Origin: Ruditapes philippinarum
Lineage: Eukaryota
Reading direction: 5' to 3'
Assembly: GCF_026571515.1 (NCBI RefSeq)
Contig: NW_026856964.1
Span: forward strand, 186,001-250,000
DNA: 64,000 nt
The notes under the pieces were generated by a model. The model saw nothing but the letters and a program-made list of their open reading frames with translations, had not been told where the DNA came from and searched no databases. Of the stretch, positions 12,993 to 64,000 are shown in pieces (the stretch's first letter is position 1; the number at the start of each line of letters is the position of its first letter). Position numbers and translations under genes: made by a program.

Positions 12993-13219
12993 AAGTTTTT
13001 TTGCTGTTGGTCGAGCAATGCTTTTGTTTTGGACAAAGTGAACTTGACCTTTGACATACTGACCTTAAACTCATTAGTTATTTTCAATATCCGTATCAAA
13101 TATGAAGACAATAATAATAATGTTAGTATTGATCCGAATAATTTCTCAAGGCAAACAAATTCATACGTTAAGACAGAACACCTTTTTCCGAAAGTAGATG
13201 TACATATCCAACGTTTTCA

Positions 13220-13465
13220 CTGTATACGTTTCCAACAAATTATACGTCGTAAGCTGTATACGTTTTCGACAAACTATACGTCGTAAGCTGTATAAGTTTC
13301 AACAAACTATACTAGTACGTTGTAAGCTGTATAAGTTTCAACAAACTATACGTCGTAAGCTGTATACGATTTCAACAAACTATACGTTGTAAGCTGTATA
13401 CGATTTCAACAAACTATACGTCGTAAGCTGTATGTTTTTTAGCAAACTATACGTTGTAAGCTGCA
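13220..13465. repeat. 33-34-bp minisatellite, about 7 copies
   Basis: Unit aaactatacgtcgtaagctgtatacgatttcaac, head to tail with no spacers. Confidence 0.92.
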
Positions 13466-13467
13466 TA

Positions 13468-14490
13468 CTACGGTGTTCCGTTTGGACAATCGTATTTTTT
13501 TTATTTAGTCTGTACCCGCGATGCACGATGGTACGATGGTGAAAACACGATGGTACGATGATGAAAACGCGATGGCACGATTGTGAAATGTCGATGGCGC
13601 GATAGAACAATGATAAAAACCCGTACCATCGCGTTTTCACCATCGTACCATCGCGCTTTCACCGTCGTACCATCTCGTTTTTATCATCGTACCATCGCGA
13701 TTTGATCATCGTGCCATCGTATTCCGGTGGTCATGCGTAATGTATGCCTTCTCATTATTGAACCCCACACTTTTTTCTATTTGAGTATCTTTGAGATCTT
13801 AGTATCTAAAACATGAAAAAAGGCAATTGCTCAAAAATTTAAACAAATAAAGTTGCCATCCTTGTGCACTGTACATATGAGGTTTCAAGTTGATATCCTA
13901 AATACAGCAAAAGAAAAAATGCAGACATATATTAAGCATACATAAGCATATATTAAATAGTCTTTGAATTATATACAGTATATACAGTATAACGACATAA
14001 ATGGCAAATAAATGTACAGATAACAGGTTTTATTATTTATAACTCAAATTAAATAGTAAGTATTCAAAACCTGTTTTTACTATCTGCCTATCAGACCCTG
14101 ACATCATTCTGTATGTGTACTAGTTATACTGACCGAAACGCGATGGTACGATGGCACCATGGCGCGATGGTGGAAACGCGATGGTACGATGGTGAAAACG
14201 CGATGGCACGATGATGAAAACGCGATGGTACGATGATGAAAGCGCGATGGCACGATAGTGAAAACGCGATGGTACGATGGTGAAAAGGCTATGGTACGAT
14301 GTTGAAAACGCGGTGGTACGATGGGGAAAACGCTATGGTACGATGGTGAAAACGCTATAGTACAATGGTGAAAACACGATGGTGGGATGGTGAAAACGCG
14401 ATATAACATCGCATTTTCACCATAGTACCATCGTGCATGGTGGGTTAGGACGAAATAAAAAATCATGATTGTCCAAACGGAGCACCGTAG
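13468..14490. mobile_element. Foldback-type non-autonomous DNA transposon with long TIRs containing 22-bp repeat arrays; flanked by TA
   Basis: ta|ctacggtgttccgtttggacaatc ... gattgtccaaacggagcaccgtag|ta. Unit gatggtacgatggtgaaaacgc occurs in both orientations in each arm. Confidence 0.88.
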
Positions 14491-14799
14491 TATACAGTAC
14501 CTTAAAGTGCATTAATTTCCACAACACGTTGATCACCTTCCGCACAAAAGTGACCACATTGCACTTATTATTCACCAAGCTCTCGTTGTACCTCAGGATA
14601 AAAAGGAACAATAACAACAGCACAACAACAACAACATTTGCCGAGTTCCGGAGAACGTTTGTGCACCAATAACCATAGCGGTACAAAACAGTTTGTTTCT
14701 ACCTCTTGATCAAATGGGGAAACACATTTGCTGGGGATTTGGAAAGAATAACGAGAACGGAGAACAGAGTGACACATAATACGATGACACATGAAATCT

Positions 14800-17700: not shown

Positions 17701-19090
17701 TGATTCTTTAATAACTTTGTAACAATGAGTAAGACGAAGGTCACAAAATTAAACACTTGCTTCAACAATTCTATGAAATCAATTAAGTGTCAACAATAAG
17801 AAATATTGATTAAATCGATTAACCATTATAGATTAAAATCGATCTTAAAGAAATTAAATGACATAGGCGGCACCTATGCAATTAAATGATCAGATCGTAT
17901 TTTTGTTCTGATTATATATTTCATGTTCATACGTTATACATTTTAAGGGGAATGATGGCCTATGGGTTATAGTTATATAGAAAGTGATTAATATAAGTTG
18001 CAAGAACTTGTTTCGCAATCGAGCTTTAATTAAATAAATGTGTTTAAACCAAACATTTAAGATATTTTAAAAAATCGCAACTAACAGTTAAGTGTTGCTA
18101 TGGACTTTGTTGCTATTGGTCTGCCACTTAACCTAGTGAACGTTGATTCGAGACCCGTTAAAGTACCAACCATGTTTCGTCATGTATTATTTGAGATACT
18201 GATTTTATTTGATGCAATTTGCATGACCAAGAATTATTGAATCCTTAAATTATTGCTTCATGTATATCCCTTTTTACTTTGTATTACATTTGTATGTCCG
18301 TTTTTTTTATTTCGTTTTCACGACGTACTTAATTTAGAGAACGAAAAACTGTTAAAGATTTGATGATGATAAGTTGGTCACGACATAAACGGGAAGTTCA
18401 CATTGATAAACCGTAATGTACAGCAAAAAAGAAAAAAATAACAATGAAAAGATAGTTTGGGTTACAAATTGAACATTGAAACCACACATTAATATATTAA
18501 TTCAAGGGCACATTAGCGTGGTTGAAGGAACACATACCTACGAATCGAGGTAAGTTTGTCGTTCGAACGGTGATATCTCGCTCCCACGACACAGTAAACT
18601 TACCTACAAAGGCACAGAAACCGGAAGTAATATGTGCTTGAAAGCGAAAGACATGGTACATATTAAATTGTATAGGCAGACATGGCGCAACCAATCTCAT
18701 TAAAATCATATCCTAACTGTCGCTCCACTACCTTACACTCGTACGTAGCAAAGAGTTATAACGGAGCGAAAACAATGATCTGATTTTAATGAGATTGTGG
18801 CGCAACAGAGATGAGATAAATGGAAAAGTATGACATGACAGTTAAAGTAATGAAATACAATATAGCTTTTAAGATATCATAATAAAATAGCGTGAATACT
18901 ACAGGTTTGGTATAACGTGATGGCCATTCAAAATGTCAGATGTATGACTATTACATTACATTCAAAGCTTCTATACACGTGTATCAGAAAAATGAAATAT
19001 GAAGAATGAAAATATAAATACAGTATGTTTAATGCTATGATAATGTTTACAATGAACCAGACATTTACCTAGAATTTCTTTTTATCGTTT
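14800..19090 (+). repeat. Upstream block of receptor copy A, duplicated collinearly at about 47690-54080 and partly at about 45645-46620
   Basis: Shared anchors: aagtcaaatttgacca (about 15459, 45858, 48178), agcagacga (about 15609, 46077, 48399), aataaaactgcatg (about 16360, 46170, 49397), ttctatgaaatcaat (about 17769, 53147). Confidence 0.85.
18692..18797. mobile_element. 106-bp MITE with 17-bp perfect TIRs and a 9-bp TSD (Mutator-like by TSD length)
   Basis: tggcgcaac|caatctcattaaaatca ... tgattttaatgagattg|tggcgcaac. The empty site (single tggcgcagc) is in the paralogous block at about 53782. Confidence 0.92.
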
Positions 19091-19117
19091 CAGGGAAACT
19101 GAACTAGACAGGGAAAT

Positions 19118-19178
19118 ATGTGGACCAGTGACTGTATTGCCTTCTTTATGCTAGTCGTTTCATGTCAAGGCCAGGGAG
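19118..19178 (+). CDS. Receptor A exon 1 (signal peptide MWTSDCIAFFMLVVSCQGQG)
   Basis: Acceptor at 19093, ATG at 19118, donor gtatta; conserved in copy B. Confidence 0.8.
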
Positions 19179-22100
19179 GTATTAAGATAGCTTTTAAGCA
19201 TCTGTAGATCTTCTTTTTAAACATTTTAATAATATGCTCATTTTTTCCAGTTAGGTGTACCCCTAAAACTAATCACCGCGCACGAATCAGATAAATTTTA
19301 AGAAGCCTAAAATAGTATTCTTTTTTTCAAATGTTTAAGAGTAACTTAGATATAGTGGCTGATTTGTGCCATTTCGGACCCGGATCGAGATTCAAGAAAT
19401 AAAACGGCGGGTACGCGGAGTAAAAACACTATTTAGCGGGGCGCGAAACGATGTTAAATGAAAGTATTAAGTCGAGCTTTTTAAGAATAATTTGGCGGGG
19501 GAGCCAACAACAACACGCGAATTAACGAGCAATAACAATAAATATTTCGCTTGCGGCCCCGCCTTATTACAATTTAATCTCGACTTTTCGACTCCGCGCC
19601 GCCGCTAATCAGCGTGTCTCGCTCCACGCCCTGGCCATTTTTTACTTTTTAATTCTCGACCTTTCACTTTGCGGGGCCGAGGGCGAGAGAGGCATTTGAG
19701 GGAGGTACAGCGCTAAAATCTAAACAATACTAATCCTCTATTTATTTCCGCTCTTGTATCATAGTTTGTGGACCTTTCTGTTGAAAATGTGTCAGAGTTA
19801 AATCGTATACGTCATAATTATATATTATACATGCACAGTGCGTTAACTGGAGTACAGGTATTAGTTACCTGCAGTCCAAAGCATACCCATTGATTTGGGT
19901 TTACTCACTGTGACGACAGAGAAAGGGATAGCGACAGAAATATCATATTCAAATGCTCGTTCATTGGTTACATTTTTTCTGGGGTTTCATATTGTGACAA
20001 CAGGGAACGTGTTTTTATATTTTTGCCTACTATAAAACAAAAAGACAAAGAAAAAAAGCAAATTTATACTCGGGGGCTGTGACCCCTCATACAAGTCAGA
20101 TAGCCTCGTTGTTTCGATGCTCTTTCTATTACATAACGACATAGAGTGGGAGAAGTTTATGTTATCTTTGATTGAATCATATAGGAAGTTTTAGTTAATA
20201 TAAGGGATGATTACACTTTATATGTTTTGGATACATCCTTGTAAAGTTCAAGCTAATGCATTTACCTATATATTGTAAGGTTCAAATATCTTGTCATCTT
20301 TTTCCGTTTGCTTATCTGAGTAGCATTAAAATATATATCTAAATATAATAACCTAATACAGAATTTTGACAAGTCGAATAACCAAAAAAAATAAATAACT
20401 GTACATGTATTTGTATCAGCTTATAAAAATCTCGCATCACAAGTATGTTATATATCAAATAATTGTCTATAAACGACAGTATAATCCGTAAAAATTATAA
20501 ATGAATTTCTAACTTTACCCTTATTTAAAAAGACATAATTTCTTAACTTGTGTGTGTGCGTGCAAGCGTGCGCGTGTGCGCGTGTGTTGTGGGTGAGTGG
20601 AGACTGGGGGAGGGGGGCTGTTGTGGTGATCTTCCCTGGCCTAATGGTTAACAGTGCTACCGTCTATTCACTTGCCCAAGAAGAATGTTGTAGGTTCAAT
20701 TACCGACATTGGCTTTGAATTATCTCAAAAAGGAAAGCTATCTAACTAACTTTCAATTTTTTATTGCTATGATTTTAATCTATTTCAAGTTTCCGTCGAT
20801 ACTTGTAAGGAAGTTTTCCTATCTCTTTATCATGCAATCTAGGAAGTGAAACGTTCATCGTATTATTTCTAGGTATTCTCAACAACAGTGTCCTGTGGGT
20901 AGCAAGTGATGGCTATCTCTATTTTAGTACACGACTACAGGAGTGGACAGAGGCCAAAATCACCCCGCAGGAATTTGGGCAGGTAGGAGAATTACTCGGA
21001 ATTTAATACTTATAATTTCTTTACTGAATATGCATATTGAGAAGAAACATCACTTCATATCGCCACCCAAACAATTACAGATAGAGACTTACTAAAACGG
21101 AACAACACAAATGGTGGAGGCAGCAAATGGGCGAAAAGATTTGGGTGGAGGGGACAGGTTTTAGAGAATTTTGAAGGTTGGCCAAAATAAGATAGGCCGG
21201 TAAAACATTTGAATGTTTACTATATAATGCAATTTGCCGTATGACATGAACTGGAGATGATCCTGAATATTATCAATATCTATATTATAAATTACAAGTT
21301 TTTGTATAATATATTTATATAAAATCTTAATTTTATATATTATATTTATTATTGTATTAACTATAACGATGACGAACAGTGACGGCGTTTTGGCATTTAT
21401 GAACATATTTACTTTTATGTCCAATGAGACCAGTTTTAAACAACCTGTTTAGAACTACTTTCGTGCAAACCGATGAACTACAAACTGCAAAATGTTACAT
21501 ACCGATCGGAAAATGCAGTTTCATTATTTCAGTGGCATAAAGCCTAAAACATACAAGATGCATTGAAATACAAATGTATATAATAAAGATGGTGCAAGCA
21601 ATAAACTATAGAATGCTTTATAAATTGGGTAAATTATTAAGACGAATTAGCAAACTTGATACAAAAATTATTATTTTTTATATCTAAATAGCCATAATAG
21701 ATCGAAAGCTCAAGAGTCATTTAATATAAATTGTTATTCTTTATATTTAAAAAGTCATAAAAGATCTATCTATATAGTCAATTCAGCTGAACCTGACAAT
21801 GAAAAATATAAGCAAAGTTTCACTTTAAGAGAAATAATAACAAAAGATGAATATTGGTTTCATTCGGTGACCGCCTGGGTGACTTTTTCTGTGGAAAACA
21901 GTGTAGAATGCTTACTGTTTGTGAACGTTGCTGTCACTTGTTAATCTGAACACCCGAGCATACGAAATAAAATCTATCTGTATTCCATTTGTCAAAGGAA
22001 ATATCTTTCTTGTATTATACAGTCAATTAAAAGTGTTGTCATTAAAGACGCAAGTTCAATTCATGGCATTGCCGGGGATATACCAACTCGACATCTTGTT

Positions 22101-25100
22101 ACCTCCGACACGGACAATAATTGGATTATACTCTTTGATCTTGATGCTAATGGGATAACATACTTTCATATAGGTACTTCTAAAGGTAAGGCTCCTGTAA
22201 TATTAATAGTTTTAAAATTTGCGCGAAAGTGTAGAATTGAATGTACATGTAATTTTTATGTCTCTTACCATTATTATCTAATATAAGAAATCATATGCAT
22301 CTATTTAAAAGCGGGTGAAAAACTACAACTACAAGTTGTATAATAAATAAAATGTTACAAACATCTGCACTCACATTTTTCATGTCTATCAATCCATAAT
22401 GCCTTAGAAATACTTTTATTTTTATTTCTCTATAGCATTTTAGTGTTGGTGTACTTCTAAAGTTTTAAAAAAAGTTGATATTGTGTCTTATGGTGCTTTT
22501 TGTATTAGGGGTTGAGTATTTTGTATGGAAGACAAAATAATACTTTGTTTTAATTTTGCTAGTTTTCTGTCAAGTAGTTTCAGAATTAGAACTACTTTCC
22601 TCAGGTAAAAAGCATATAAAATGCTCTAAAACCACTTTTTCAACAGTACACTACATGTTTGACCGTTCTAAAGAAGTATAGATTTAATATTTTCTGAGGC
22701 ATAATGTGCCTTTGAGACAAATATTATATATCTTGAAAGGTAAAGCGATGATTTCACACACGCGTTACCCATATAATCCAAAATGTAAGAAAGTTTGAAT
22801 AGTTTCTTTTAAATTTCACGTACATGTACTTTGTAATGATTTCTATCATCACAGACTTTAACATTAATGTGAACCTATTTGCGTGTTAGATTTTCAGTCT
22901 TCTGTTACAGATATAGGACATCTGGCAATAGACTGGTTAGGTAGAAACGTGTATTGGACGGACGCAGGGTTCGGTTGGATAGCTATGAAACATTTGCCAG
23001 AGAACATTACTCAAATAAATTCAGCTGATCAAAATTTTAGGGTCGTTGTGGACGAGTTCATAGAGAAGCCCACAGGGATAGTTGTACACCCGGAAAGATA
23101 GTAATTGCTACATATATTAACTTAGAATACAGTGCTTTATAAGCGCTTTGTTTACTAGAATTCCCGATTATTCATATTCGGACACCCAATAAGAAGGCCT
23201 TACTTTATCAGGCAAGGCTAAGGAAAAAAAAGAAAGAAGGGCGAGGCTCTGTCAACTTTGTTGTTCGTGTCGAGCCTGATAAATCTTATGAACTCATTTA
23301 CTTGTTTGGTATACTAGATATCATTTTTGAAATTTTGATATGCAATGCTTTAAATTTTAAAAATAAAAACCTGTCATGTCGCGTGTTAATATGACAATGC
23401 TCATATCTCTAAGAAATAGTCCCAAATGTATTAAGTCAATGTTTTCGATACATATTTTATCAGTTTCAAACTAGTAGGAGATAGAATATTCAATTCTCTT
23501 CATTATATTTCAAAATATATTGATGGGGTGTCTGATAAAGGTTCGTGTGACTGATAAAGCTAAACTTATCAGGTATAAATTTTATCAACGGAAATCAATT
23601 TAGTCATTTGATAAAATGAAAATATATATAGTATATGCATGTACATATCAATATGTTCTTGTCCTCTTTATAATTTCGTCAAACAGCTTTATGCATTCCA
23701 AGTAAGGAATTTATTAGCTCCTATAAATAGAAACAATGTGAATCTTAGGATTTAATGTACATTTTTAAGTGAATTAAATTAAGGACACTTATTGGTTTAC
23801 TTTAAATCTGAAAAAGGTGCTTTCTTTCTTATTAATCATGGACATAATGCTCTTTGTTCAATTTGTTGGATTGAATCAGTAACATATTCCGAAAGATTGG
23901 CTGTTGTAAAATGATTATTGTCCAATAAATGATTATGAAAAAAGTTTATGATACAATTTAAAAAGCAACATAGATTATTAAAAAAAAGACTGCCCCATTC
24001 TTTTTGAGAATTAAAAGTTATATATACATACTCTACGACATTTATAAAAAATACGTTAGTTTTGTGGATTATTGACCTATTTCATCGTAAAATATAGATT
24101 TTAACCCAATTTTTGCAAGTTGTGATTGAGCTATCTCAAATATTTTTACCTGCGTCATCTATTACCAGTTGAGCAACTTTGAATTAACGATTTATTTCCT
24201 ACTTAAAAATCTTTTATCAGAGAAATTAACACTCCAATCAGCATTTTTTACTGCGCTAATATTATAGGAAATTTATCTAAAGAAAAATATTTCGAGGCTT
24301 TTTGTTTTGGACTGACCACCGGCCAACTCCTAATAAACCAAAATAGAAACTCACTAAATCGTCCATGAGCCAGGAAAGAAAAAAATCAATAATATTGGCA
24401 GCCAAAGTATTGTAACGCCTACCAACCCACTGTACTTGACTCTCTAGATCACACGGGAAAGATTGTAGGTAATGTGATTACCCAAGATCGTAGAAGAACT
24501 ATTTTGAGATATTTCATATGTATTTGTCAAATGGAAATGGCAGAACGAATACTTTGTTTGACCGTATCCCAGGAACTAAACTAACTATTGGAATGGCGAG
24601 ATATATACGCGACGGTTATTACTAAACATTATGAAAAAATTACTATACACATAACTATTATTATCATTTGGGCTATTCTCTTGTCAACATGAAGATTACC
24701 TCATATTTAATATATTTTGCCTCCGATAATATGTAATCTGGATGAGCGTTGACATTGCCAAAATACATTTAAAAGAAAAATGGGAGAATGTGTGATTACT
24801 ATTTAAACCACAAATACATCAAAAATAGTATAGAACTAAGGCAATTTGATATCTGATTCAAGAATCGAGTTCCTTACATAATGAAAGTTACTGATCGGGG
24901 CAAACGTGGTCAATATATGTGACGTAATATAGTGATTTATATGCGCCTAAGTTCAGAATTCTAGCTCCTCATATGACGATTTGTTTTTTATTATACGAGT
25001 CATCATCGTGTGTTCTCTCAGCTTTATTTATAGATATTTAATAAGATAGTTGCATTTGAAGCTCTTTTGCATTTGAGACCAGAGAAATTCGTCCTCATTA

Positions 25101-28100
25101 TATAGGCATAGTCTTTGTGTGTATCTATATTTATATAAATATAATTCTTACAAAACATCATGTAAAGCGAACATAAGATATTAGATGTGTATGTTCCTAG
25201 TTGGAACGACCTAATTACCTTCTTGACCAGGTATTGGATTTAAAAAGGTCCGAATATGGCCATGCCCATCTGAACATTCTATGTGAATAATATCAAACTC
25301 AGCTTACAACTCCTCCAGAAACAGATTTATAATGGTGTTTCATCGTTTCATGATGCAATGAAGATCATCTAAAGTCTTCTAGCTTCCGGAAAGAGTTGTA
25401 CGGTGGTTTACTACTGTGATATTCCTTTTTACAGCAAAGCTTAACCGAGACGTCACGATGCACTTTCTAGTTTTTATGTATTCGGTGGCAAACGACAGCC
25501 TAACCCACCCTGACCTCGTAGTATGTTTATATGATTGAGAAAAGTCTAAACATTGAACACTATTTTTAGAAAGTTTCAGTCGAGCGTCTGTCAATCAATC
25601 TCATCAATTCGGCTTCACATTCTAAGTTCTTTCATCCATGATTCATTTCAGGATTCGATCATAACTAATATAAAATACAGTGCAAAATTTTAATAGAACG
25701 GATGTACGTTTCGCTGAAAGAAAATTAATGAAAGGCCGAACAAACATACCAAGCCCAGTATAGAAATTGAACCAATGCGCAAAACTTTTTCCAACAAATT
25801 TGTATAGGTATATGCATTCAAGAAATGCAGACAGACACCGAACAGATGGTAAATGTGGCAACTAACATATAATTCTATATTATAAAAAGATCTTTTCTCA
25901 CAAGTCTACTGCAGCGCCGCTCTCACTCAATAACCTTGTTCACACACAATCAGCTTGTAGTTACACCACTTGACGCTAATAACACCACCTTGACGATAAT
26001 ATCACTATAGGATCTGACAAAAACATTGTACGCATTACCTACCACCTGAATATTTCACCAGTGCAGTAAATATATAAATGTATACAACACTTCTATACAC
26101 ACGTGTGGAACACAATTATATTCAAACACTTGACACACAATATCATACGACGCACCTTAAAAGATCTGAGCCACACACGACCATTAATTTTTTATGGTTT
26201 TATGTTAATCAGCAAAGTCGTATTGATTGAACCATTCAACAAACTGTATTTAAGATGATTACCGAATTAATATTTCATGTTAATAAAGGGAGGGTAATTG
26301 TTAGAAATAATTCAGCCTCTTCTATTAAATTCCATAAGTCAATTTTATCCATTAAGAATATGATATGCATATATAATTATGAATATAGACCTTAAATATG
26401 TTATCAAATATTTGGAAAATGATCATGAGCTCTTACAAATATGCCCGTTCTGTCCATGTTGAAAATTTGAAAAAAATTTGTGCTAAATTACAGACATATA
26501 ATAATATAACGCAATGAAGGAAGGTGTCATGCAGTTCTCCCAATTACATGTACAAAAGCGAATATGAGCGAAATCAATGCATTAACATGATTATACAAAC
26601 GTGTCATATAGACGACTTGACGTATTCACACCACTTTACAATCAATTGACTTCTACACCATTTGACATATACAAACCAGTTTAAAACAGAGAGTGACACA
26701 ATCCTATCGCTGAATTCTCGATCGTGATCTTAAATGCACACAACATTGTCACTGTGATTGTATAACAATCAATTGTGACAATATAACAGGCGACACTATG
26801 ATCGAGATATAAATCATCCCACTCCAAAGTTTTCTTCTATATAATAAAAATGTTTAAGTACTACTTGACATATACACCTCTTGATTTATACACCATTTGA
26901 CATATACACCTTTGACGTATACACTTATTGACGTATATACCAATTAACGTATATGCCAACAACCGGGGACACTAACCGTCATTTATCACAGCGATGCAAT
27001 TGTGTACAACGTAATTAAGAAATAAACATCGCCTGTAGAGTTTGTATATGGCATCTAACACCGGTTTGGATTTGATGCCCCCGTAGGAATTGAACCACAT
27101 GAAAAAACTTTTAGGACCTGTGGACAGTGGATAATTTTAGTCGTATCAAAAAAACGTACAAGCAACCAGTTGTTATAATAGCCGATAGTACACCTCTCAG
27201 GCGTAAGTTTATTTCGATTCCTTAACACACGATAAAAATTAAGCGAAAATAAGCAAAATCACTGAGTGTATTTTTTAAAGCCGAGGAAAAAACTTTTCGG
27301 TCGATTTTCGATATAACGCTGTTCAATTTTCGCACTACCTTACTGTATCAGCAAGAATATTGAAATACCGTCGTTAAACCAAAAAGGAAAATACTAAGAA
27401 AAAAAAAACGTTCCTATTTTATCAAGTTTTGAACAATAAAAACTAACGTCGTATTGTGTTTACGATTCAGTGTCCCAATTTATCATTCTAATGTTATGTA
27501 ATAGAAAATAACGTCAGGCCTTGTTTATGAACGATGTTGTTTACTTAGCTATACGTCACTTACGCTGCCTCTTACGGATTAAAACGCCGCTTTTGTCAAA
27601 AATATTTATTAACGGCATAACCGGATCTAATATGTCGTCGCGTTAGTGTATTGAGAACTATTTCTGTATTTGTATGAAAAGAAAACATTAACAAACTGAA
27701 AATATATATCATACACAATGACTTAATATATATAGATACTATCTAAAATGCTTGTTAACTATCGTAACAATCAGAAAGGGGTGAAAACATTAACAGCTCT
27801 ATATTGACAAGTAGTTCCCTAACCGCGTGTTTATGTGCAGTTTAACACCAGTTTTTTTACTTCTTTGTCTATAGTGACAAAGTCACGTGAGTGTTAGAAT
27901 TTAAAATAACAGTAGAAAAACATAAAATGTAATAAATGTTATATAAATTTAAAGTTACTTGCGTTTTTGTTTTTCAAAAGCATTGTGTAAGAAGGTAAAT
28001 GAATGTGATCAAATATGTCTACATATGGAGATGGATGCTGGATTCATCGTGCCTCTTGAGTGGAGTGGTTTATGACCTACATTTCCGGCTACAGTGATTG

Positions 28101-31100
28101 TAAGGTAATGTTTCAATTTCTTGTCAGTTCAGCGCATTATTTTCTCCTATGTAATGAAGAAATAATGATACTGCTTGAGTCTCCCAAAAGGAAAATTCAT
28201 TGAAAAGGAGCGTTCTCTTAACTGCAGAATTGGTTTGATTAAGATCATTCATTGGCGATACAGAATTGTCCAACATCCCCTACTCTTCCTACCATTGATT
28301 CAATTTTCAGCACTTCACGTTTCACGAAGAATGATCTTGGCGGAAATGAAATATAAAAATAACACCGAGAGTGTGAGAGATGTTGCTTTTATCATTGTTC
28401 CTCACAAGGGGAATCTTCCCCCTTTTTAACACAAGTTTAATGCCATTGTTCTAGATGGATCTCCTTTATTCTGCATTGTTACTATCATCCTTGGAAGAGA
28501 AAAATGACTTGTACTACCCAATTGTCAATGTCAGTTTACATATTTACAGATTCATCTGACAATGCTCTTTTACATAATTGTTAAATTGATGTGCTTTATT
28601 TTTTAGGTTCACTAATTGCTAACTCTTCATATCTAAGTCTTGTCTCCCTAACATAATTCATACGGCAAGAAGTATCGCCAAAGGAAAAAATTATTACGGA
28701 TTTCTTATCTTGGAAATAAAATACTGTCCTATGATAATAAAGTTCCCCAAAAATGTGTTAGGTCAAGATTTTGAATTTTTTATTTGAAAAGAAACATCAT
28801 CTTCAAAATTGTTATACATGCACTAAAAATCTTGCTGTAACATTTCATTAATATGCCTATTAATTGTTTTTTTTTCTTGCAATAATTTAAAACATGTGAA
28901 TAGTTATAAGAAGCAGTATTAAGGAAAATATATTTGGAAATATCATTAAGTCAACACAACAGTTTACCCAAAGTTATACTTAATTATAAAAACATATATT
29001 GCGTGAGTTGAAATTGATAATTCTGCAAATAATCTTACTTAAATTAACGCATCTGTCAATATTGGTGTCAGATACTTTCTTATGTTTTGTGATGCAATTT
29101 TTATTTTGTTTTCAGTTGATGAGAAAGTGTTGGAGAGACACATTTTGTTTACGAATGACAAAAGCATCTGCGCCGTTCCTGTATCTGTACTTGGCCTCGG
29201 GAGCTCATCCATCTTTTCTATACATTGTGATCTGGTGAAAGGGGATAGCTACGTTACAAGGTGTACCTGAATAGACTTTATTATAATTTAATATTTCAGA
29301 TTTATTTGATGATATGGGATGCTCTTGCTGATCAAACAGGGGTTTTTTCTTCAGAATTTTAATATATTTAATTTAGATTATCATAAAACGTTACATTGAT
29401 AAACATATCTTAAATTTAAATTGGTTCATCATCAAATAATAGGTACCAAAACAAAAACCATTTAATAGTTAGGGGGAAAGTTTTTACAATGATGCTATAG
29501 TGCCAGAAATGGCGACACTGCGAATAGTGGTCATGGGATCAGACAACTCGAACATGCCGAATGTTCATTAGAGTCTGCCCTTAAGATCTCATCTGTAAAA
29601 ATAATTGCACGCCAGCAGGGATTAAAGGTGAAATGACAATGATTTAGTCTGACGTGGCTACATAACATTAGTTTGCTAATTGTTGTGTAAAAACCAATTT
29701 ACATAATTAACATATATATACTAGATGAATTACTAACTTTATCTTTAAGAGTTGCCGTAAACATGAGGACAAAAGATTCGGTTATTTTAATTATACAAAT
29801 GATCTTCAACAATATTTAAACAGCCTGCATTCAAAGAAGATCAAAGAGAAGTGCTTTACGAATCTGCTGGTATAGTTATAGGTACATGGTTCAATTATTA
29901 TTATAACTGATTTTTATTAAGACCACATTGCTTGATTATTTTAAAGCATTTGTATCTTATGGTGATTATTTTAAAACTGAAATATTTAAACAAGAACATA
30001 CAAAACTCAAATCTGTCTTGAGTGCGTGTCATATAATGGGGCCTCTTTGAAACACACCACTTCTACGTTTGAAAAATATACAAACATATATTGATAAAAA
30101 AGCCAGTCTGCATAACAATAGTTTTATCTTTTGCTGAAACTCATGAAGCTTATGTTCATTAAATTAAAAAAATACTTTACATAAAAAGTTACTATTAATA
30201 TCTTAATACTTATATCGTAATATAATCAACTTTTTATTATAAAAGTACTAAGATATTTATAGTATTATCTTTATATTATATCATAAAGTAATGGTACTCT
30301 TCGTAGTGGAAATCACTATTTTGACCTGTTCATCATTGTTTATTGCAATTCATATTCTTCGGAAACTGAAATGATGAAAATGATATAGATAAGAATAAAC
30401 ATTAATCGGAAGAGAATTATTTATAATTATAAATGTTAAACACTTCAAAATTAACGAATATTTCGTCTTTCATACACTAGAACGTAAATTAAAAACAATG
30501 CTTTTATTTCAACTTCTGTAATATTCATAGTTACCATACTATATTGATTAATTTAAAGATCGAAACGCTTACCAAAATAAGTATAACTGATAATACATGT
30601 GCGTATGCGTTTCATTATTCAAAATTTAAGATATGGATTGTTGGATCTGGATATAAGTTATGTTGTTGCTCCAATTATTGCGAGAGAAAAAGACATATCG
30701 GTATCATCTCTATTATGCTTCAATAAGAAAAGTTGTGATCTGGAAAGTTTTGATCGAACAATTAACAGATTCAGATATTCACTAAATATAGCTGGTTAAA
30801 CACACATAATAAGTTAAACGATTTAAACAGACTGTTCTTTTAAAGCAATTACAAGATAAACATCATACTTACCCGAGAAGAATACAAATCAACAAGACAT
30901 AATACATAATATAGAAAATGATTCCTTCAACATTGCCCTATCTATATCATCCTATGTTATTCTTCTTAATACAATTAACATATTCAATATTAAATCTCCT
31001 TAAAGAAAGCACGATCCTTTTACAGTTTGATATCTTACCTTGATTAAAATAATACTGTTAAAAGCATCTGACTGTCCTCAATGTTTCACATGGTAGGCGT

Positions 31101-53006: not shown

Positions 53007-54103
53007 AGTGAATATGATTTTATAAAAAGTTCTGTTGACTACTGTTTGGACCAATAAGATTTCAGCTATATTTAGATCATATGATAATATGTTATATTAT
53101 ATTATTCCGTTCATTACTTCATGCATGGATACAATTGGTTTAACAGTTCTATGAAATCAATAAAGTGCCATCAGCAATAAATATTAATTGAATCGATTAA
53201 CCATTATATAAGAGATAAAACAATCAATCTTTCGAAATTAAATGAGATAGGCGGCAACTATGCAATTAAATGAGCGAATTTTTTTCTGATCTTGCATGTG
53301 CATACAATATACATTTCAATTTTTAAAAAAGCTAAGAAATAAGTGTTTATATGTATTTTATTGTTAATTATTATTATGGTCTACCACTCAACCTAGTTGA
53401 CTCAAGCTGTGTTTAGTACAAACCATGTTTCCTCATATGGTATTTGAGAAACTGATTAAAGATAGTTGCATGATGAAGAAATATTCAAAAATATTGAAAA
53501 GATGTCATAATACAATTCTGTTTTTACTTGGTATAAAGTTTTGTATTTCATTGTTTTTTCGTTTATTGCCATTCGAGTGGTTTGATATCTCTTTCCTACG
53601 ACACAGTCAGTTATTTCAAACAAAAAACAAACTAATAAGGTACAGTTACGGATAAAATATCTGCTTAAAAGCGCATGACACAATCGGACCTTTTCTGCTA
53701 TTATTTCATTTTAAAGTTCTTATCCAAAGACTGCCGAAAAGGGCGCAAGAAAGTATACATATCAAATTGTAAAGGCAGGCATGGCGCAGCGATTTCGTTA
53801 TCCATCGAAATGACGAATGGAATAGTATTATGTTAACATAATCAAAAGAGATAAACTGAAGAAAGTAAATAAACTTTGAGAAACTGTTTTTATAAAGTAA
53901 CGTTGCACCCTCAAGTTTGTTATAACGTGATAGCCAATCAGATGTAAGAAAATTACATTACATTAAAACCTTCTATACCCATGTATCAGGTTATATTTGT
54001 TCATTGTGATGAAAGTGTTAACGATGAATCAGAAATATCACATTACAACTTAAATTTACCTAGGTTTTTATAATTTCAGGGCATGCGAACCAGAGAGGGA
54101 AAT

Positions 54104-54164
54104 ATGTCGGCCAGTGACTGTATTGTCATCTTTATGTTAGTTGTTTCATGTCAAGGCCAGGGAG
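54104..54164 (+). CDS. Receptor B exon 1 (signal peptide)
   Basis: MSASDCIVIFMLVVSCQGQG; an extra in-frame ATG lies at 54083. Confidence 0.8.
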
Positions 54165-57100: not shown

Positions 57101-60100
57101 CGAGGTGAAGCTAATTCAAGAGCAAAAGATGAATAACAGTGTCATTCGGTGACCACTGGGTGACTTTTTCTGTGAGAAACAATGTAAGATGCTTACTGTT
57201 TGTGAACGTTGTTGTCCCTTGTAATTCTGAACACCCAAACATACGAAATAAAATTCATCTGTAGTCCATTTGTCTTAGGAAACTTTTTTTATTGTATCAT
57301 ACAGTCAATTCACAGTGTTGACATTGAAGGCGCAAATCCAAGTCATGGCATTGCCGTGGATATACCAACTCGACATCTTGTTACCATTAACTCCGAAAAG
57401 GACTTTTATGCGATTGCACTCTTTGATCTTGAAGTTTATAGGATAACATACTTTCATGTAGGTATCTCTAAAGGTAAGGTTCCTATGATATTTTCAGTTA
57501 AAATTACAGAATTAGGCGTAAGTGTAAAATTGTATGTAAGTTGTATTTATCAAATTTATGTAAGACTTTAGAAAACATATGATTCGATATAAAAACCGTT
57601 GAAAAGCTACAAATACATGTTTTATATATTAAATATACTAGAGAATGCTCCAAATATGTACATGTCTCACGGCAAATTTGTGATCTTAAAGGCCCATTAT
57701 GCCTCAGTAATGCTTTTTATTTCTCTATAGCATTGTGTTTTTGATGTACTTCTACAGTTTCAAAAACAGTTGCTCATTGGCCAATAATCTGTTTCTTCTG
57801 GTGCTTTTTATATTTTGTACAGTTATAGTGATTGTGTATTTTGTATGGAAGTCAAAATACTACTTTATTTACATTTTGCTACTTTTATGTCTAGTAATTA
57901 CATAATTAGAGCTACTTTTCTCAGGTAAAAAAATGTCTAAAAAGCTTTAAAACCATTTTTTTAACGGTACACGTCTCATGTTTGACCGTTCTTTAGAAGT
58001 AAAAAATCATTTCTTTAGGCATAATGTGCCTTTGAGACAAATAGTATATATTCTAAAAGGTATAGCGTTGCTTTTATGTGTTTTACCTGTAGAGTCCAAA
58101 CTTTCACAATATTTGAACATTTCTTTTTAAATTTCACGAACATGTACTTTGTAATGATTTCTATCAACACGGGATCAAAATCTTTATTCTATCTACTACA
58201 TATAGAACAATAGAAACGTATGTTCAAAGGGTAAATTAATGTGAACATATTATTTTGAAATTTGATTTTTTAGTCTTTTATTGCAGACATTGGACATCTT
58301 GCGATAGACTGGTTAGGTCGGAACGTGTATTGGACGGACGCAGGTTTCGGTTGGATAGCTATGAAACATTTACCAGAGAACATTAATCAAATAAATTCAG
58401 CTGATCAAAATTTCAGGGTTGTTGTGGACGAGTTCATAGAGAAGCCTACAGGGATAGTTGTACACCCGGAAAGATAGTAATTGTTACATATCTAAACTTA
58501 TATTACAGCGCTTTAACAGCGCTTTGTTTACAAGAATTCCGGATTATTCATATTCGGACACCCTATAAGAAGGCCTAAATTTGAAAGTTTCTGACAGTCA
58601 GTTTTGCAAAAAATAACCCCAATAGTCTTTATCTAACCATTTATTTAAATGCCGCGTTTGTCAAGTTATATAGAATACCTTGCTAGTGTCGGATATTACA
58701 ATATTTATCAGACAAGGCTAAGAAAAAAAAGAAGGTCAAGTCTCAGCCAAACCTTTATTTGTCTCGTACCGAGCCTGATAAATTTTATAATATAAGACAG
58801 ACACTTTTTTGGTATACTATTTATCATATTTGCACTTTTAATATGCGTTTTATTTTTAAATTTCAAATAAAATAAAAAAAAATATGCCAGGTCATGTTGC
58901 ACGCAGTAATATGCCGAGGGTCATATCTTTAACATATAGCCCGAAATGTGTTTAGTCAATATATTCGTTTTAAATTTTATCAGTTTAATATTTAAAACTA
59001 GCAAGAGGTTAAATATTCCATTCTCTTTATTTTATTTCAATATGTATTGATGAGGTGTATGATTAAGCTGAGGGGGACTGAGAAAGCTAAATTTATCAGG
59101 TCATAATCTTATCAACAGAAATCAATGTAATCACGTGATAAAATGGAAATACTTATATCAATGTGTGTCAAATAGCTTTATGCATTCGAAGTAACGAATT
59201 TATTAGCTCCTATAAACTGAAACAATATTATTCTTAGGGATTAACATACTTCTTCAGAGAAAAAAAAGGAAATACTTTGAAATGGTTTACTTTAAGACTG
59301 AAATAGGGTTTTTTTTTTATTAATTTCATGGACATATTTTTCGATGTCAAATTGGGCTGAATTAGTAATATATACCGGAATATCAAGATCGGCTGTTATA
59401 TAATGATTATTGTTTATTAATACCTATGCTTCTATTTATAGTAACAAAATCAAGGGTATTTCAGGGCCAAGATGGCTGCTGACGTTGAATGAATATAGTT
59501 ACTTACCAATTGTTTTAAATAAATTAATCGATCACAATCAGCAAAGCTTAACATTGAGTATTTATAAACTCCAGACAATACACGACCCTCAGAAATTCCA
59601 AAATGATTATAGATTGACGGTAGGAAAAGATTAATCGTTCGCATTTAGACCTAGACATCAGAAACCGTTCTTGAAGGCACAAAACTTCATAAAATACTGG
59701 CACTATATCTTTATTAGAAATGCAATTCACACAAAAATGTAAAGAGTAGAGTATTTATCGGTAAAACAACAATAAAACAACATTCTCTTATATTCATTTA
59801 GTGTTGTCTCCATTCTCTAAGTTAATCGGAGTGTTAAACTGTATGACAGATATTTGTTTACATTGACAACTGTCCGTTTCTTAGAAAGGACGACAACCAA
59901 GATTAGCGACGATGTCTAAACGCCGTATTTCGGACATAGCATTTAAGACGTTAATCGAGTTCACAATGTTTAACGGTAGTTGTAGAAATTTACGTTGGTA
60001 TGAAACAGCTCTAGGTCATTTGATTTGTACGACGGGGCTAATTCCCTGAATGTGATATAACAGATTACCGAGTGTTTTGATTTTGCTCTCTTTTGTATCA

Positions 60101-63100
60101 CAGTCAAAAAATAAGATCACGTCCCTTTTTGTCATACTATGAAACCCCATATGAACGAGCATCTGAATATGACATTTCTTTCGTTATCTCGTTCTCTGTC
60201 GTCACATTAAGTACACCCCAGAAAAAATGAGTCATTCGGTGAGCATGCTATGGAGTGCGGATAACTTATACCTGTACCCAAGTTAACGCTCTGAACATGT
60301 ATATGTATACAATTTAACTCTGACATAATTTCAACACAAAGGTCCCCAAACTATGATATACGTGAACAATTGATTTTGTTTTCATAGTAAAATATAAAAT
60401 TTAACCCAATTATAGCAAAATATTTAGTTATCTTTATTTCTACATGTTCACTTACAAGTTACACTTTGATAAACATTATTTCATTTAAACCATTTTAATG
60501 AAGACTCCAAAGCATTTTACTACATTGCAAACATATATAGAAATGTATCCAAAGAAACTGTTTCAGCTTTTTGTTTTGGACTGACACCGGCCATACTCCA
60601 AAAATAGAAAGGTCTAATCTGATTGGTCAGGAAAGAAAAACAATCATTTGGCAGAGTATTATCACGCCTACAACGCTATGTATTGACCAATCAGCGGAAA
60701 GATTGTATTGGAGTGACCCAGAAAGAAGAACTATTGAATATTCAGATTTTGATGGAAATGGCAGACGAATACTTGTGTCGCATCCAGAACTAAACTACTA
60801 TGGAATTGCAGTATTTCGGGTATCTAAAACGAAAAATTCTGAATACTTTATTCAAAGGCATCACTTGTAAATGAAGTCCTTATTTAAGATTTCGCTCCAA
60901 TGTAAAACGAGGTTGACATTTTTGTGTAATTTTAAAAGAATATGGTAAATGTAGTGTTTACATTAATAACCACAAATATGAATAGTAAATACGATTGTTC
61001 TGTAAATCATTTCTTACAATATGAAAGTTACTGATCGGTCAATTGACGAATACGTGTTACATGATGCTGAAAGTCTTAATGTCGGATTGTTTTCTATACA
61101 CACACAACTTTGTCTCAGCAATAAGTGTTGCTGCTTTGCATTTGACACAGAGCTTCTGTCCCAGTGGAGTGCTTTTGTGTTGTTTTTTTTTATAAAATCT
61201 AAAGCTATGGCAATATAAAGGGAGGGGAGAGTATCTTTGACAAAGTGCTTAAGGGCGTTGATTTTAAAATACTTGCCACCCACCGCTTTGGGTTCAACTC
61301 ACTCCAGGAACGTTTGATTCCTTCATGTGAGGAAGCTATCTATTCAGTTCCGGGAGCTTCGTTGTTTTACTGTGATGTCCTTTAAAAGTAATGCTTAACA
61401 TAGGTCATATGACTTTGATAGTATTGGTGCAACGTAAGCCTAACCCACCCTGACCTTTGTAGTATGTTTATATGATTAGAAAAGTCTAAACATGAAATAT
61501 TTGAAGTTTCAGTCCGGCGTCTGTCAATCAACTCATCAATTCGGCTCATTTCTAAGCTCTTTCATCATTTATTATTTCAGGATTCACTCATATATACAGT
61601 GCCAAATTTTAATAGAACGGGGTACGTTTCGCTGAAAGAAAATAATGAAGGCGAACATATACAAGCCAGTATAGAAATTGAAAAGACCAAACTTTTCGAT
61701 GTGATGGCATATGCATCAGAAATTCAGGAAGAACCGACAGATGGTAAAGTGAACTCTTATAATTGTTTTAAAAGATCTTTTTCTTACAAGTTCTAACGCC
61801 TTTTATCTCATACATATTTTATCTAACCAATCGTAATGCTAATACACCTTTTGACGTAAACACCACTTGACGTTTACACAATTTGACATAAACACCGCTT
61901 GACATATACACTACTTGACATATACAAAACTTGATATATACGATATATACACCACTTGACATATAGACCATTTGATTTATACGCCACTTGACGTATCCAC
62001 CACATGACATATACACGACTTATTCACCACTTGAGATTTACACCCCTTGACATAAACTCCATATATATTGACATATCAATCAGTTGACGTATTCACCATT
62101 TGACATATACACCATTTGACATATACACCATTTGACATATACACCATTTGACATATACACCATTTGACATATACACCATTTCACATATACTCAACTTGAA
62201 GTATTCATCACTTGACATGTACACCACTAGACGTATAAACCATTTTACATATACCCCAATTGCTGTATACACAATTTGACATACGAGTATACACTACCCG
62301 ACGTAAATACAACTGTATATATTACCACTTGACCTTTATGCCAATTGACACATTCAACAACAACCGGGGACAACTACAGTTGACAGAATGTCATTTATCA
62401 CAGCGAGGCAATTGTGTAAGAACTTTCAACAACATAGTAAACATAAAATGTAATAAATGTAATATAAATTTAAAGTTACTTGCTTTTTTGTTTTTCAAAA
62501 GCATTGTGTAAGAAAGTAAATGAATGTGATCAAATATGTCTACATATGGAGATGGATGCTGGATTCACGTGCCTCTGTAGTGATGGTTATGACCTCATTT
62601 CCGGCCGTAATTGTACAGGTAATGTTTTCATTTTTCTTGTCATTCAGCATTTTTTTCTCCGGTGATTTGAAGAATTTGATACTGCTTGGTCTGCCAAAAG
62701 AAATTTGTGAAAAGAAGAGATCATTATACTGAGACTTGGTTTGATTAAGATTATTCATTGGCAATACGAAATTATCCAACATCCCCTACTCCTCCTAGCA
62801 TTAATTTAAGCAGTATTAAATTTTCAGCACTTAACCTTTCACTATAATGGTCTTGGCGGAAAGGAAAGATAAAATTACACCGAGAGTGTGAGAGATGTTG
62901 TTTTCATCGTTGTTCCCCACAAGGAGAATCTTACCCCTTGTTAACACAAGTTTGATGCCATTGTTTTCGATGGATCTCCTTTATTATGCATTGTTACCAT
63001 CATCCTTGGAAGAGAAAAAATGACTTGCACTACCCAATTGTCGATGCCATTTTACATATTTACAGATTCATCTGACAATGCTCATTTACCTAATTGTAAA

Positions 63101-63838
63101 ATTTGCTTATATAAGTGGTTACTTCAGGTATTGTTTTAATCTGTCATTCTTAGCCATTCTTAGTTTTGTTCCCCGCTGTACATAATTCATACCGAGAAGG
63201 TATTGTAAAGAAAACAATATTACGGATAATCCAACACAAGTATGTAGCTCAGTGGATTCTGACATTAATTAATACATTTTTGTTCCCTAAAATTTCATGC
63301 GTTTATCTTTTTTGTCTATTTTTATCTATTATTAATATTATAATTAGGTTCTTTAATATTTGCAAGTCAAGGTTTTGAACTATTTATTTTAAAGAAACAT
63401 AATCTGCAAAATTGTAATACATGCACTAAGAAAATTGCTGTTATATTTCATTTTCTTTTACTTTCGCAATAAAAAAAAGATATTTATAAAACAGTCTAAG
63501 GAATGAAGTTGGCAATATTCTAAATCAAACAAAAACTTTGTTACCCCAAGACATAACTTAATTATAAAAATAAATGTGTCAAATGTTAATTCTGCAAATG
63601 ATCTTACTATGATTGACACTATCAATATTGGTGTCAGACACTTTCTCATTGTTATCTTTTGTGATGCAATTTTGTTGTTGTTTTCAGTTGATGAAAAAGT
63701 GTTGGAGAGACATATTTTGTTTACAAATGACAAAAGCATATGCGCCGTTCCTGTATCTGTACTTAGCCTTGGGAGCTCTGTTGCAGCTATCTTTTCTATA
63801 CATTGTGATCTGGTGCAAAGTGATAGCTACGTTACTAG
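54104..63838 (+). CDS. LRP-like receptor copy B (tandem paralogue): exons 1-8 intact, gene continues beyond the window
   Basis: Exons 54104-54164, 55528-55637, 57305-57473, 58287-58476, 60567-60819, 61581-61743, 62502-62618 and 63688-63838 splice in frame with GT-AG sites and mirror copy A. Confidence 0.92.
54588..54770. repeat. Compound (CAT)n(TTC)n(CAC)n(GTC)n microsatellite
   Basis: Read directly from the sequence. Confidence 0.9.
55528..55637 (+). CDS. Receptor B exon 2
   Basis: ILNNSVLWVARDGHLYFSTRLQEWTEAKITPLEFGQ. Confidence 0.85.
56564..56707. mobile_element. Palindromic Crypton-like non-autonomous repeat; related pieces at about 52262-52390 and 51255-51395
   Basis: ccattgaatatgatgtgatattcaccg pairs with cggttgaatatcatgtcatattcaatgg around a cgag..aagccgagg centre. 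Superfamily assignment is from memory. Confidence 0.6.
57305..57473 (+). CDS. Receptor B exon 3 (hypervariable)
   Basis: SIHSVDIEGANPSHGIAVDIPTRHLVTINSEKDFYAIALFDLEVYRITYFHVGISK. Confidence 0.87.
58287..58476 (+). CDS. Receptor B exon 4
   Basis: IGHLAIDWLGRNVYWTD...HPER; one amino acid differs from copy A. Confidence 0.9.
60567..60819 (+). CDS. Receptor B exon 5 (two YWTD repeats)
   Basis: FLFWTDTGHTPKIERSNLIG...RLYWSDPERRTIEYSDFDGNGRR. Confidence 0.92.
61240..61445 (+). mobile_element. Decayed SINE of the 52740 family, shared with copy A at about 25250-25505
   Basis: gggttcaac..ttcatgtgaggaagctatc core; the same 3' junction (gcctaacccaccctgacc) is present in both paralogues. Confidence 0.7.
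61581..61743 (+). CDS. Receptor B exon 6
   Basis: DSLIYTVPNFNRTGYVSLK...LFDVMAYASEIQEEPTD. Confidence 0.87.
61840..62350. repeat. 16-bp minisatellite (atatacaccatttgac), roughly 30 degenerate copies
   Basis: Perfect 16-bp period at 62101-62180. Confidence 0.92.
62502..62618 (+). CDS. Receptor B exon 7 (EGF 1)
   Basis: LCKKVNECDQICLHMEMDAGFTCLCSDGYDLISGRNCT. Confidence 0.9.
63688..63838 (+). CDS. Receptor B exon 8
   Basis: DEKVLERHILFTNDKSICAVPVSVLSLGSSVAAIFSIHCDLVQSDSYVT. Confidence 0.87.
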
Positions 63839-64000
63839 GTGTACCTGAATTAACTTTATTATAATTTAATATTTAAGATTCCTTTAATGAACGTAGATGT
63901 TATTGCTGATCAATAAAATTGTTTTTTCTTCGGAATTTTAATATTTTAGGTTATCATAAAACCTTACAATGATAAACATCTCTAATGGACTTGGTCATCA

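Follow-up and report, generated by a model that had tools for sequence, protein, structure and literature searches.

The YWTD (LDL-receptor class B) region of LRP6, LRP4, LDLR, and megalin consists of a six-bladed propeller followed by an EGF module. By convention, the 4-1 and 2-3 loops of such a propeller face the top and the 3-4 loops the bottom, and the top face forms the binding interface in both LRP6–DKK1 and nidogen–laminin recognition. More generally, a YWTD domain's top face has been described as a binding interface (PMC5452030). The same order of domains is predicted for two tandem genes of Ruditapes philippinarum, hereafter copy A and copy B, which lie in the 64,000-nucleotide stretch analyzed here (contig C5451:186001-250000; referred to as the window, whose first letter is position 1), and whose third exon, encoding blade 2, differs between the copies almost entirely by amino-acid replacements. 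The likeness to the known receptors has limits: identity to LRP6, LRP4, LDLR, and megalin is ~20–24%, the blade 2 motif is degenerate (HLVTSD), and, unlike LRP4, the molluscan family combines three propeller-EGF modules with Sushi, with no LDL-A detected.

In its pattern of divergence, the clam pair resembles the MHC, KIR, and plant NLR/LRR families, in which the ratio of nonsynonymous to synonymous substitution rates (omega, or dN/dS) exceeds 1 in binding loops—that is, a replacement excess is found in part of the ectodomain, with the scaffold conserved, the duplicates are arranged in tandem, and silent divergence is mosaic, suggesting gene conversion. Unlike those families, the pair comprises just two copies and gives modest statistics, and neither a ligand nor a role in immunity is known for it. 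A further likeness, to the variable 5′ exon clusters of protocadherins and UGT1A, stems from the RefSeq model of the locus, in which two alternative 5′ units are joined to shared exons 5–8; the clam units, however, consist of four exons each with acceptors of their own, and the model with shared exons probably arose from assembly noise in copy A.

Exon 3 is 163 nt long in copy A (bounded by acag/TCAATT and TCTAAAG/gtaagg) and 169 nt long in copy B, with both frames open, and a search of the clam's own genome found only these two copies. If the 6-nt indel is set after ...HLVT, the placement used in a first-pass annotation made from the letters alone, 20 of 54 aligned codons differ, none of them by a synonymous change only, in addition to the two-codon in-frame indel. 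The 25 nucleotide differences fall on codon positions one, two, and three in the proportion 10/11/4, and Nei-Gojobori counting gives 1.0 silent (Sd) and 24.0 replacement (Nd) steps on S = 37 and N = 125 sites. A BLOSUM global alignment, in which the gap falls later, raises the figures to 22 differing codons and 30 nucleotide differences, still with no silent-only codon. For these counts, and for these only, exons were joined; all searches used single exons or the database proteins P0001 and P0153. The neighboring exons gave 2 silent and 4 replacement steps (exon 1), Sd = 1 and Nd = 3 with one further replacement in a split codon (exon 2), and Sd = 10 and Nd = 1 with one further silent step in a split codon (exon 4; dN/dS 0.02). 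Thus, the recount reproduces the figures of the first-pass annotation for exon 3 and, once split codons are included, also those for exon 4 (10 silent to 1 replacement) and exon 2 (4 replacement to 1 silent).

Judged against its own silent sites, the replacement excess in exon 3 is significant. The pairwise codon-model fit gave an omega of 7.4 (likelihood-ratio test against omega = 1, p = 0.011), and, when 25 random unselected substitutions were simulated in the exon, the mean number of silent steps was 5.9–6.7, with P(Sd ≤ 1) = 0.001–0.004 and P(no silent-only codon) = 0.005–0.009; in other words, the replacement-to-silent ratio is 24:1 against a neutral expectation of ~19:6. The ratio also differs from that of exon 4 (1:10; p = 5e-7) and from the 45:34 of the other eight exons in the comparison (p = 2e-4). 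The omega of 0.02 in exon 4 indicates that both copies stayed under purifying selection.

Self-comparison of the window showed that the duplication places copy A from ~14.8 kb and copy B from ~47.7 kb to past the window end. The gene spans ~19.1–40.6 kb in copy A and runs from 54.1 kb beyond the window end in copy B, and the introns of the two copies are ~75–78% identical, with many indels. A search with the exon-4 peptide retrieved the RefSeq proteins of the locus, P0001 (405 amino acids, "LRP4-like isoform X2") and P0153 (414 amino acids, "pro-EGF-like isoform X1"). When these were mapped on the window, every exon found had canonical AG/GT sites, including 8 of 8 for exons 1–4 in each copy. 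The exons are as follows.

19118..19178, + strand: copy A exon 1, with start codon and signal peptide, ending in phase 1; 100% tblastn match to P0001 residues 1–20, GT donor
20873..20982, + strand: copy A exon 2, blade 1 strands 2–3 and a helical insert; tblastn match to P0001, RNA joint 20982->22023 in run X20
22023..22185, + strand: copy A exon 3, residues 58–111; AG/GT sites, joined in RNA to both neighboring exons, matched by an RNA contig at 163/164
22911..23100, + strand: copy A exon 4, covering blade 3 and the first strand of blade 4; tblastn match, 1142-nt RNA contig with 1 other letter
24299..24600, + strand: copy A equivalent of exon 5, frame-broken as assembled, inside an insertion-rich tract
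54083..54164, + strand: copy B exon 1; splicing reproduces RefSeq P0153
55528..55637, + strand: copy B exon 2; tblastn match and splice sites
57305..57473, + strand: copy B exon 3, 56 codons including the two extra codons "IN"; AG/GT sites, open frame, part of P0153
58287..58476, + strand: copy B exon 4; tblastn match and splice sites
60567..60819, + strand: copy B exon 5, blades 4–5; tblastn match
61581-61743, + strand: copy B exon 6; tblastn match to P0001 and to the Mercenaria protein P0154
62502-62618, + strand: copy B exon 7; tblastn match to P0001 and P0154
63688-63839 (or 63848), + strand: copy B exon 8; tblastn match to P0001 and P0154

Blade 6, the EGF module, and the beginning of propeller 2 are specified by copy B exons 6–8 (61581..63848). 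The RefSeq models of 405 and 414 amino acids reach their stop by read-through from exon 8 into the intron that follows (63839-63848). Past this point, similarity to Mercenaria and full-length relatives reveals additional exons in each copy, covering propellers 2 and 3, EGF2, EGF3, and Sushi. In copy A, the later exons lie at 29115-40560 of the window, with those for EGF2, propeller 3, EGF3, and Sushi extending up to 40.5 kb, and in copy B, which is cut by the contig end, the later exons lie at 250-375, 5966-6115, 6577-6726, and 9081-9658 of L017.

The first-pass annotation had assigned exon 3 to a propeller, an assignment that holds. Pfam PF00058 (Ldl_recept_b) scored 47.5 bits on P0001 and 44.6 bits on P0153 against a gathering cut-off of 21; single exons fall short of it, with exon 4 alone scoring 14.6–15.8 bits. 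An AlphaFold2 (AF2) model of P0001, built from a 34-row alignment, had a mean predicted local distance difference test score (pLDDT) of 87.3 and a predicted template modeling score of 0.88, and showed a six-bladed propeller of ~24 strands followed by EGF-like strands. Its top Foldseek matches were megalin, LRP6, LRP4, ApoER2, and LDLR (E 1e-24 to 1e-21), with target-normalized TM-scores (template modeling scores) of 0.88–0.89 to LRP6 E1 (3sov, 3sob). YWTD-type motifs lie in DSSP strands at VYWTD 125-129, LFWTD 177-181, and LYWSD 221-225, and the degenerate motif of blade 2 lies at 81-86. The gene product is accordingly modeled as a YWTD propeller plus EGF. Taken together, full-length relatives from Haliotis, Saccostrea, and Sinanodonta, of ~1,170–1,270 amino acids, show a signal peptide and three propeller-EGF modules, followed by Sushi and/or a transmembrane segment. 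LDL-A repeats were detected neither in P0001 and P0154 nor in the full-length relatives P0025, P0030, and P0059. Given that no LDL-A repeats were found and that the propeller-EGF modules number three rather than four, the name "LRP4-like" is one of similarity only, and the two genes are, as judged from sequence comparison, tandem paralogues of a mollusc-type receptor bearing that name. The propeller containing exon 3 is the N-terminal one, and would be membrane-distal if the protein is anchored like its full-length relatives.

In the DSSP assignment of the model, exon 2 contributes strands at residues 26-31 and 35-39, and exon 3 comprises strand 4 of blade 1 (60-63) and strands 1–4 of blade 2 (70-76, 81-86, 91-96, and 101-107). 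The 20 variable residues of exon 3, 11 in loops and 9 in strands, are placed as follows.

Residues 60, 63: blade 1 strand 4
Residues 65, 66, 68, 69: 4-1 loop (64-69)
Residues 70, 75: blade 2 strand 1
Residues 86-91 and the two extra residues of copy B: 2-3 loop (87-90) and its edges
Residue 93: blade 2 strand 3
Residues 98-101 (DANG/EVYR): 3-4 loop
Residues 107, 109: also variable

With variable residues in the 4-1, 2-3, and 3-4 loops as well as in strands, the changes would, by the usual convention, fall on both faces of the propeller as well as in its strands.

A broader comparison was made with Mercenaria mercenaria, from which came the sole close orthologue identified, the "LRP-like" protein P0154, 65% identical to P0001 across 98% of the P0001 length. 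P0154 has the same exon-wise layout and keeps the DIPTRHLV core of blade 2, but, in each of the three stretches where exon 3 varies, it carries a third sequence distinct from those of A and B. All three proteins differ at 14 of the 20 positions that vary between A and B, and polarization by Mercenaria makes B derived at 5 positions and for the indel, and A at 1. The amino-acid differences between A and B relative to those between A and Mercenaria are 20:28 for exon 3, 3:18 for exon 2, and 1:15 for exon 4, the exon 3 ratio differing from that of exon 2 (p = 0.03) and that of exon 4 (p = 0.002). These ratios indicate that exon 3 sped up following the duplication, over and above a rate that is fast in general.

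That generally fast rate is itself a family trait: column entropy across the family is 2.9 and 2.8 for exons 2 and 3 against 1.9 for exon 4, making the former two the least conserved, and identity to Mercenaria is 48–50% for exons 2–3 against 76% for exon 4. In an independent trio of paralogues on another clam contig, C8011 (L005, L007, and L009), the same loops are variable, with omega at 0.27–0.64 in the blade and 0.12–0.26 in blade 3, and the proportion of synonymous differences (pS) in the blade is normal, at 0.19–0.33. An omega below 1 in this trio indicates that low constraint on blade 2 is the family background. These data bear on the main rival to positive selection, namely that constraint was relaxed and nothing more: the blade 2 loops would drift about neutrally, and the few silent changes would reflect either chance or a recent short gene-conversion tract. 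Such drift combined with a low local silent rate would also account for a proportion of nonsynonymous differences (pN) in exon 3 close to the intron divergence (0.19 and 0.22, respectively), and the low local pS is not unique, that of exons 2 and 12 being 0.04 as well. However, neutrality predicts ~6 silent changes among 25 (P ≤ 0.004), and, with 26 of the 54 exon 3 residues conserved to Mercenaria, the remainder has by our estimate changed more than the intron rate predicts. Furthermore, the flanking intron is 15% diverged upstream and 36% diverged downstream, so that no conversion tract visibly spans exon 3. Relaxation without selection is therefore considered possible but on the doubtful side. 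Synonymous-site constraint on blade 2 across the family was rejected as a cause of the low silent rate, given the pS of the C8011 trio, and no donor paralogue from which the variable stretches could have been acquired by micro-conversion was found, nothing resembling exon 3 being present elsewhere in the genome.

The explanation preferred here is fast post-duplication divergence of a weakly constrained blade with diversifying selection behind it, to which we assign about an even chance. Since the duplication, blade 2 would have gained replacements at about the neutral (intron) rate, with the synonymous sites of exon 3 and the protein sequence of blade 3 (exon 4) hardly changing. As about half of the exon 3 residues are constrained, being conserved to Mercenaria, the free positions would have changed faster than neutral. 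Selection would have acted on the blade that is least constrained of the propeller across the family, giving the two paralogues different blade 2 surfaces and, possibly, sub- or neo-functionalized partner binding, and patchy gene conversion probably keeps dS locally low, leaving silent divergence a mosaic.

Several observations weigh against this explanation. The pN of exon 3 (0.192) does not exceed the overall intron divergence (0.222; 0.148 just upstream of the exon and 0.36 just downstream), nor is it significantly greater than the divergence of silent sites pooled over the compared exons (35/254.5; p = 0.18), meaning that the signal comes from a local silent rate that is unusually low, and hinges on 1 silent step in 37 sites. 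Across exons, pS is itself a mosaic, at 0.03–0.04 in exons 2, 3, and 12, 0.085–0.18 in three others, and 0.26 in exons 4 and 8, for which patchy gene conversion would be our guess. The differences occur in multi-nucleotide groups beside an indel, so that there may have been fewer than 25 independent events. Only two sequences were compared, and exon 3 was picked post hoc among ~13 exons. The sub-unity omega in the C8011 trio points the same way, as does the restriction of read confirmation to copy A, described below. With respect to structure, neither enrichment of the variable residues in loops over strands (p = 0.27) nor their clustering (runs test, p = 0.22) is significant, and the DANG/EVYR cluster lies in a 3-4 loop, which conventionally faces the bottom. 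Finally, we know of no ligand or function for this receptor.

The first-pass annotation had proposed strong positive selection on clustered residues of a ligand-binding top face. The observation itself is confirmed and the interpretation supported in part: the replacement excess stands when measured against the exon's own silent sites (omega 7.4, p = 0.011; P = 0.001–0.004), but "strong" does not, in view of the intron rate and the pooled comparison, and selection is plausible yet unproven. Clustering is not borne out by the runs and loop-versus-strand tests, and a top-face assignment sits poorly with 9 of 20 variable residues in strands and one cluster in a 3-4 loop. A literature search returned no paper on this receptor family or on selection in molluscan YWTD propellers, a search for protein homologues of the exon 3 open frame found none, and metagenome contigs scanned for exact patterns, one from the core of exon 3 and one from the start of exon 5, gave no hits. 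If the divergence is adaptive, the locus would offer a small, clean example of one propeller blade retuned following tandem duplication, and, in a receptor family expanded in bivalves, blade 2 would be the place to seek partner specificity. At present, it is mainly a well-documented candidate.

Four sequencing runs were aligned to copy A (19000-24999), so that read evidence covers copy A only. The X20 RNA contigs contain GT..AG joints 20982->22023 and 22185->22911, linking exons 2, 3, and 4, and have zero depth in the unique intron sequence separating these exons. A 210-nt RNA contig spans 22020-22183 with 1 other letter, matching exon 3 at 163/164, and a 1142-nt RNA contig contains A exon 4, also with 1 other letter, and extends 945 nt beyond the exon 4 donor. 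Exon 3 of copy A is thus expressed and spliced 2-3-4. Independent DNA contigs (X5, 2016) cover the exon 3 bin at a depth of 25, with no difference among the contigs listed (59 more lay outside that list); in raw RNA, runs X23 and X24 reach 0.3–3.5x on exons, too low for joints. These contigs confirm exon 3 of copy A, one of the two exons for which the first-pass annotation asked for a check.

These data also bear on whether sequencing or assembly errors in one exon 3 copy could have produced the divergence. Error-like tracts do occur in copy A 1–2 kb downstream, and read evidence for the exon comes from one copy. Yet copy A is matched by RNA and covered by independent DNA, the block containing exons 3 and 4 (21841-23206 against 57123-58582) has an ordinary indel-to-substitution ratio of 25:218, and each copy has open frames and a full set of canonical splice sites in exons 1–4, with the 6-nt indel as the only one in exon 3; an artifact is highly unlikely. 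The intact frame, which the first-pass annotation had set apart from the error-rich tract downstream, is real by the same measures.

Variation among the X20 RNA contigs was also noted over exon 3 of copy A, with 1/164, 3/81, and 3/45 other letters, compared with 1/192 in exon 4, so that polymorphism of exon 3 within the species may be unusually high. This hint from the 3/81 and 3/45 contigs underlies an extended reading in which blade 2 would serve a mollusc-specific receptor family as a dedicated, hypervariable surface for recognition, diversifying between paralogues and polymorphic within species, with gene conversion keeping the scaffold codons identical; we regard that reading as rather doubtful. 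In exon 4 of copy A, position 23010 is C/A polymorphic in both RNA and DNA runs, the A allele changing ACT (Thr) to AAT (Asn)—the copy B state—with loss of an N-I-T glycosylation sequon, and position 23038 reads C, again B's state, in every X5 contig. These variants common to both copies reflect either gene conversion or reads aligned to the wrong copy.

RefSeq X2 (P0001) consists of A exons 1–4 and B exons 5–8, and X1 (P0153) of B exons 1–8. As assembled, A exons 5, 6, 7, 9, 10, and 11 are frame-broken, and B exon 5 is the sole intact close copy in the assembly (one match at 100% in the own-genome search, the next at ≤45%). Taken at face value, this arrangement describes a single gene with two alternative 5′ cassettes, in which A has lost its own exons 5–7 and A exons 1–4 are spliced over 37 kb to B exons 5–8; under this model, exon 3 would act as a cassette exon that varies, and blade 2 would be almost the sole difference between the two proteins. 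In keeping with such splicing, the RNA contig with A exon 4 has no match over 23101-24999. Against it, what separates the A tracts from B is almost exclusively small insertions, a pattern that suggests long-read noise rather than decay: A exon 5 has ~12 insertions and no deletions relative to B exon 5 (the exon itself gave no high-scoring alignment in the gap count), and several blocks of copy A within ~25.5–31.1 kb show extra-in-A to gaps-in-A events of 24:2, 41:10, and 43:1, indels and substitutions being roughly equally common in them. Depth in independent DNA contigs falls to 3 at 24200-24399 and 0 at 24400-24999, the RNA contig runs from A exon 4 into an intact exon 5 with 2 mismatches to B5 in the first 30 nt and a CAA (Gln) as in A's noisy tract and in P0151, and copy A retains homologues of the later exons up to EGF3 and Sushi at 40.5 kb. 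The cassette arrangement, and with it a cassette role for exon 3, is thus unlikely.

Insertion bias, indel frequency, zero DNA depth, and the RNA exon 5 together lead us to read the tracts as uncorrected long-read noise. With moderate confidence, and in preference to the cassette arrangement, the locus is taken to contain two full paralogues, with X2 an annotation work-around. The noise in copy A (24000-26000 and 28000-31100) likely breaks exons 5–7 and 9–11 and caused the chimeric X2; the isoform joining copy A to B should accordingly be treated with caution, as it probably owes its existence to noisy tracts in the assembly. In the RNA, A exon 4 is followed by either a genuine copy A exon 5 or an allele of B5. 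Decay of copy A into a pseudogene was rejected as a cause of the divergence on the basis of the exon 4 omega, the RNA splicing, and the likeness of its "broken" exons to insertion noise. A parallel with alternative blades in the Haliotis isoforms X1/X2 was likewise rejected, those isoforms differing by just 2 signal-peptide residues.

Many further propeller paralogues occur in the clam genome, among them on contigs C8011, C3075, C8765, C8713, C8940, and C4556, and are 33–45% identical to the exon-4/-5 peptides; in the C8011 trio, the equivalents of exons 2–4 lie within one open frame. The introns just after exons 2 and 4 (20983-21065 and 23101-23200) are 84–89% identical between the copies, locally 95%, compared with 78% for introns, and could be conversion tracts or contain splicing signals. 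In intron 1 of copy A, 19600-20200 is a very high-copy repeat, with word depth above 100,000 in DNA contigs, raw RNA reads at 35–70x per strand, and many joints and loose ends, features that make it a likely expressed transposable element. In addition, self-comparison showed tandem or minisatellite repeats at 13200-14500 and 61840-62290, with several direct and inverted copies at 75–89% identity.

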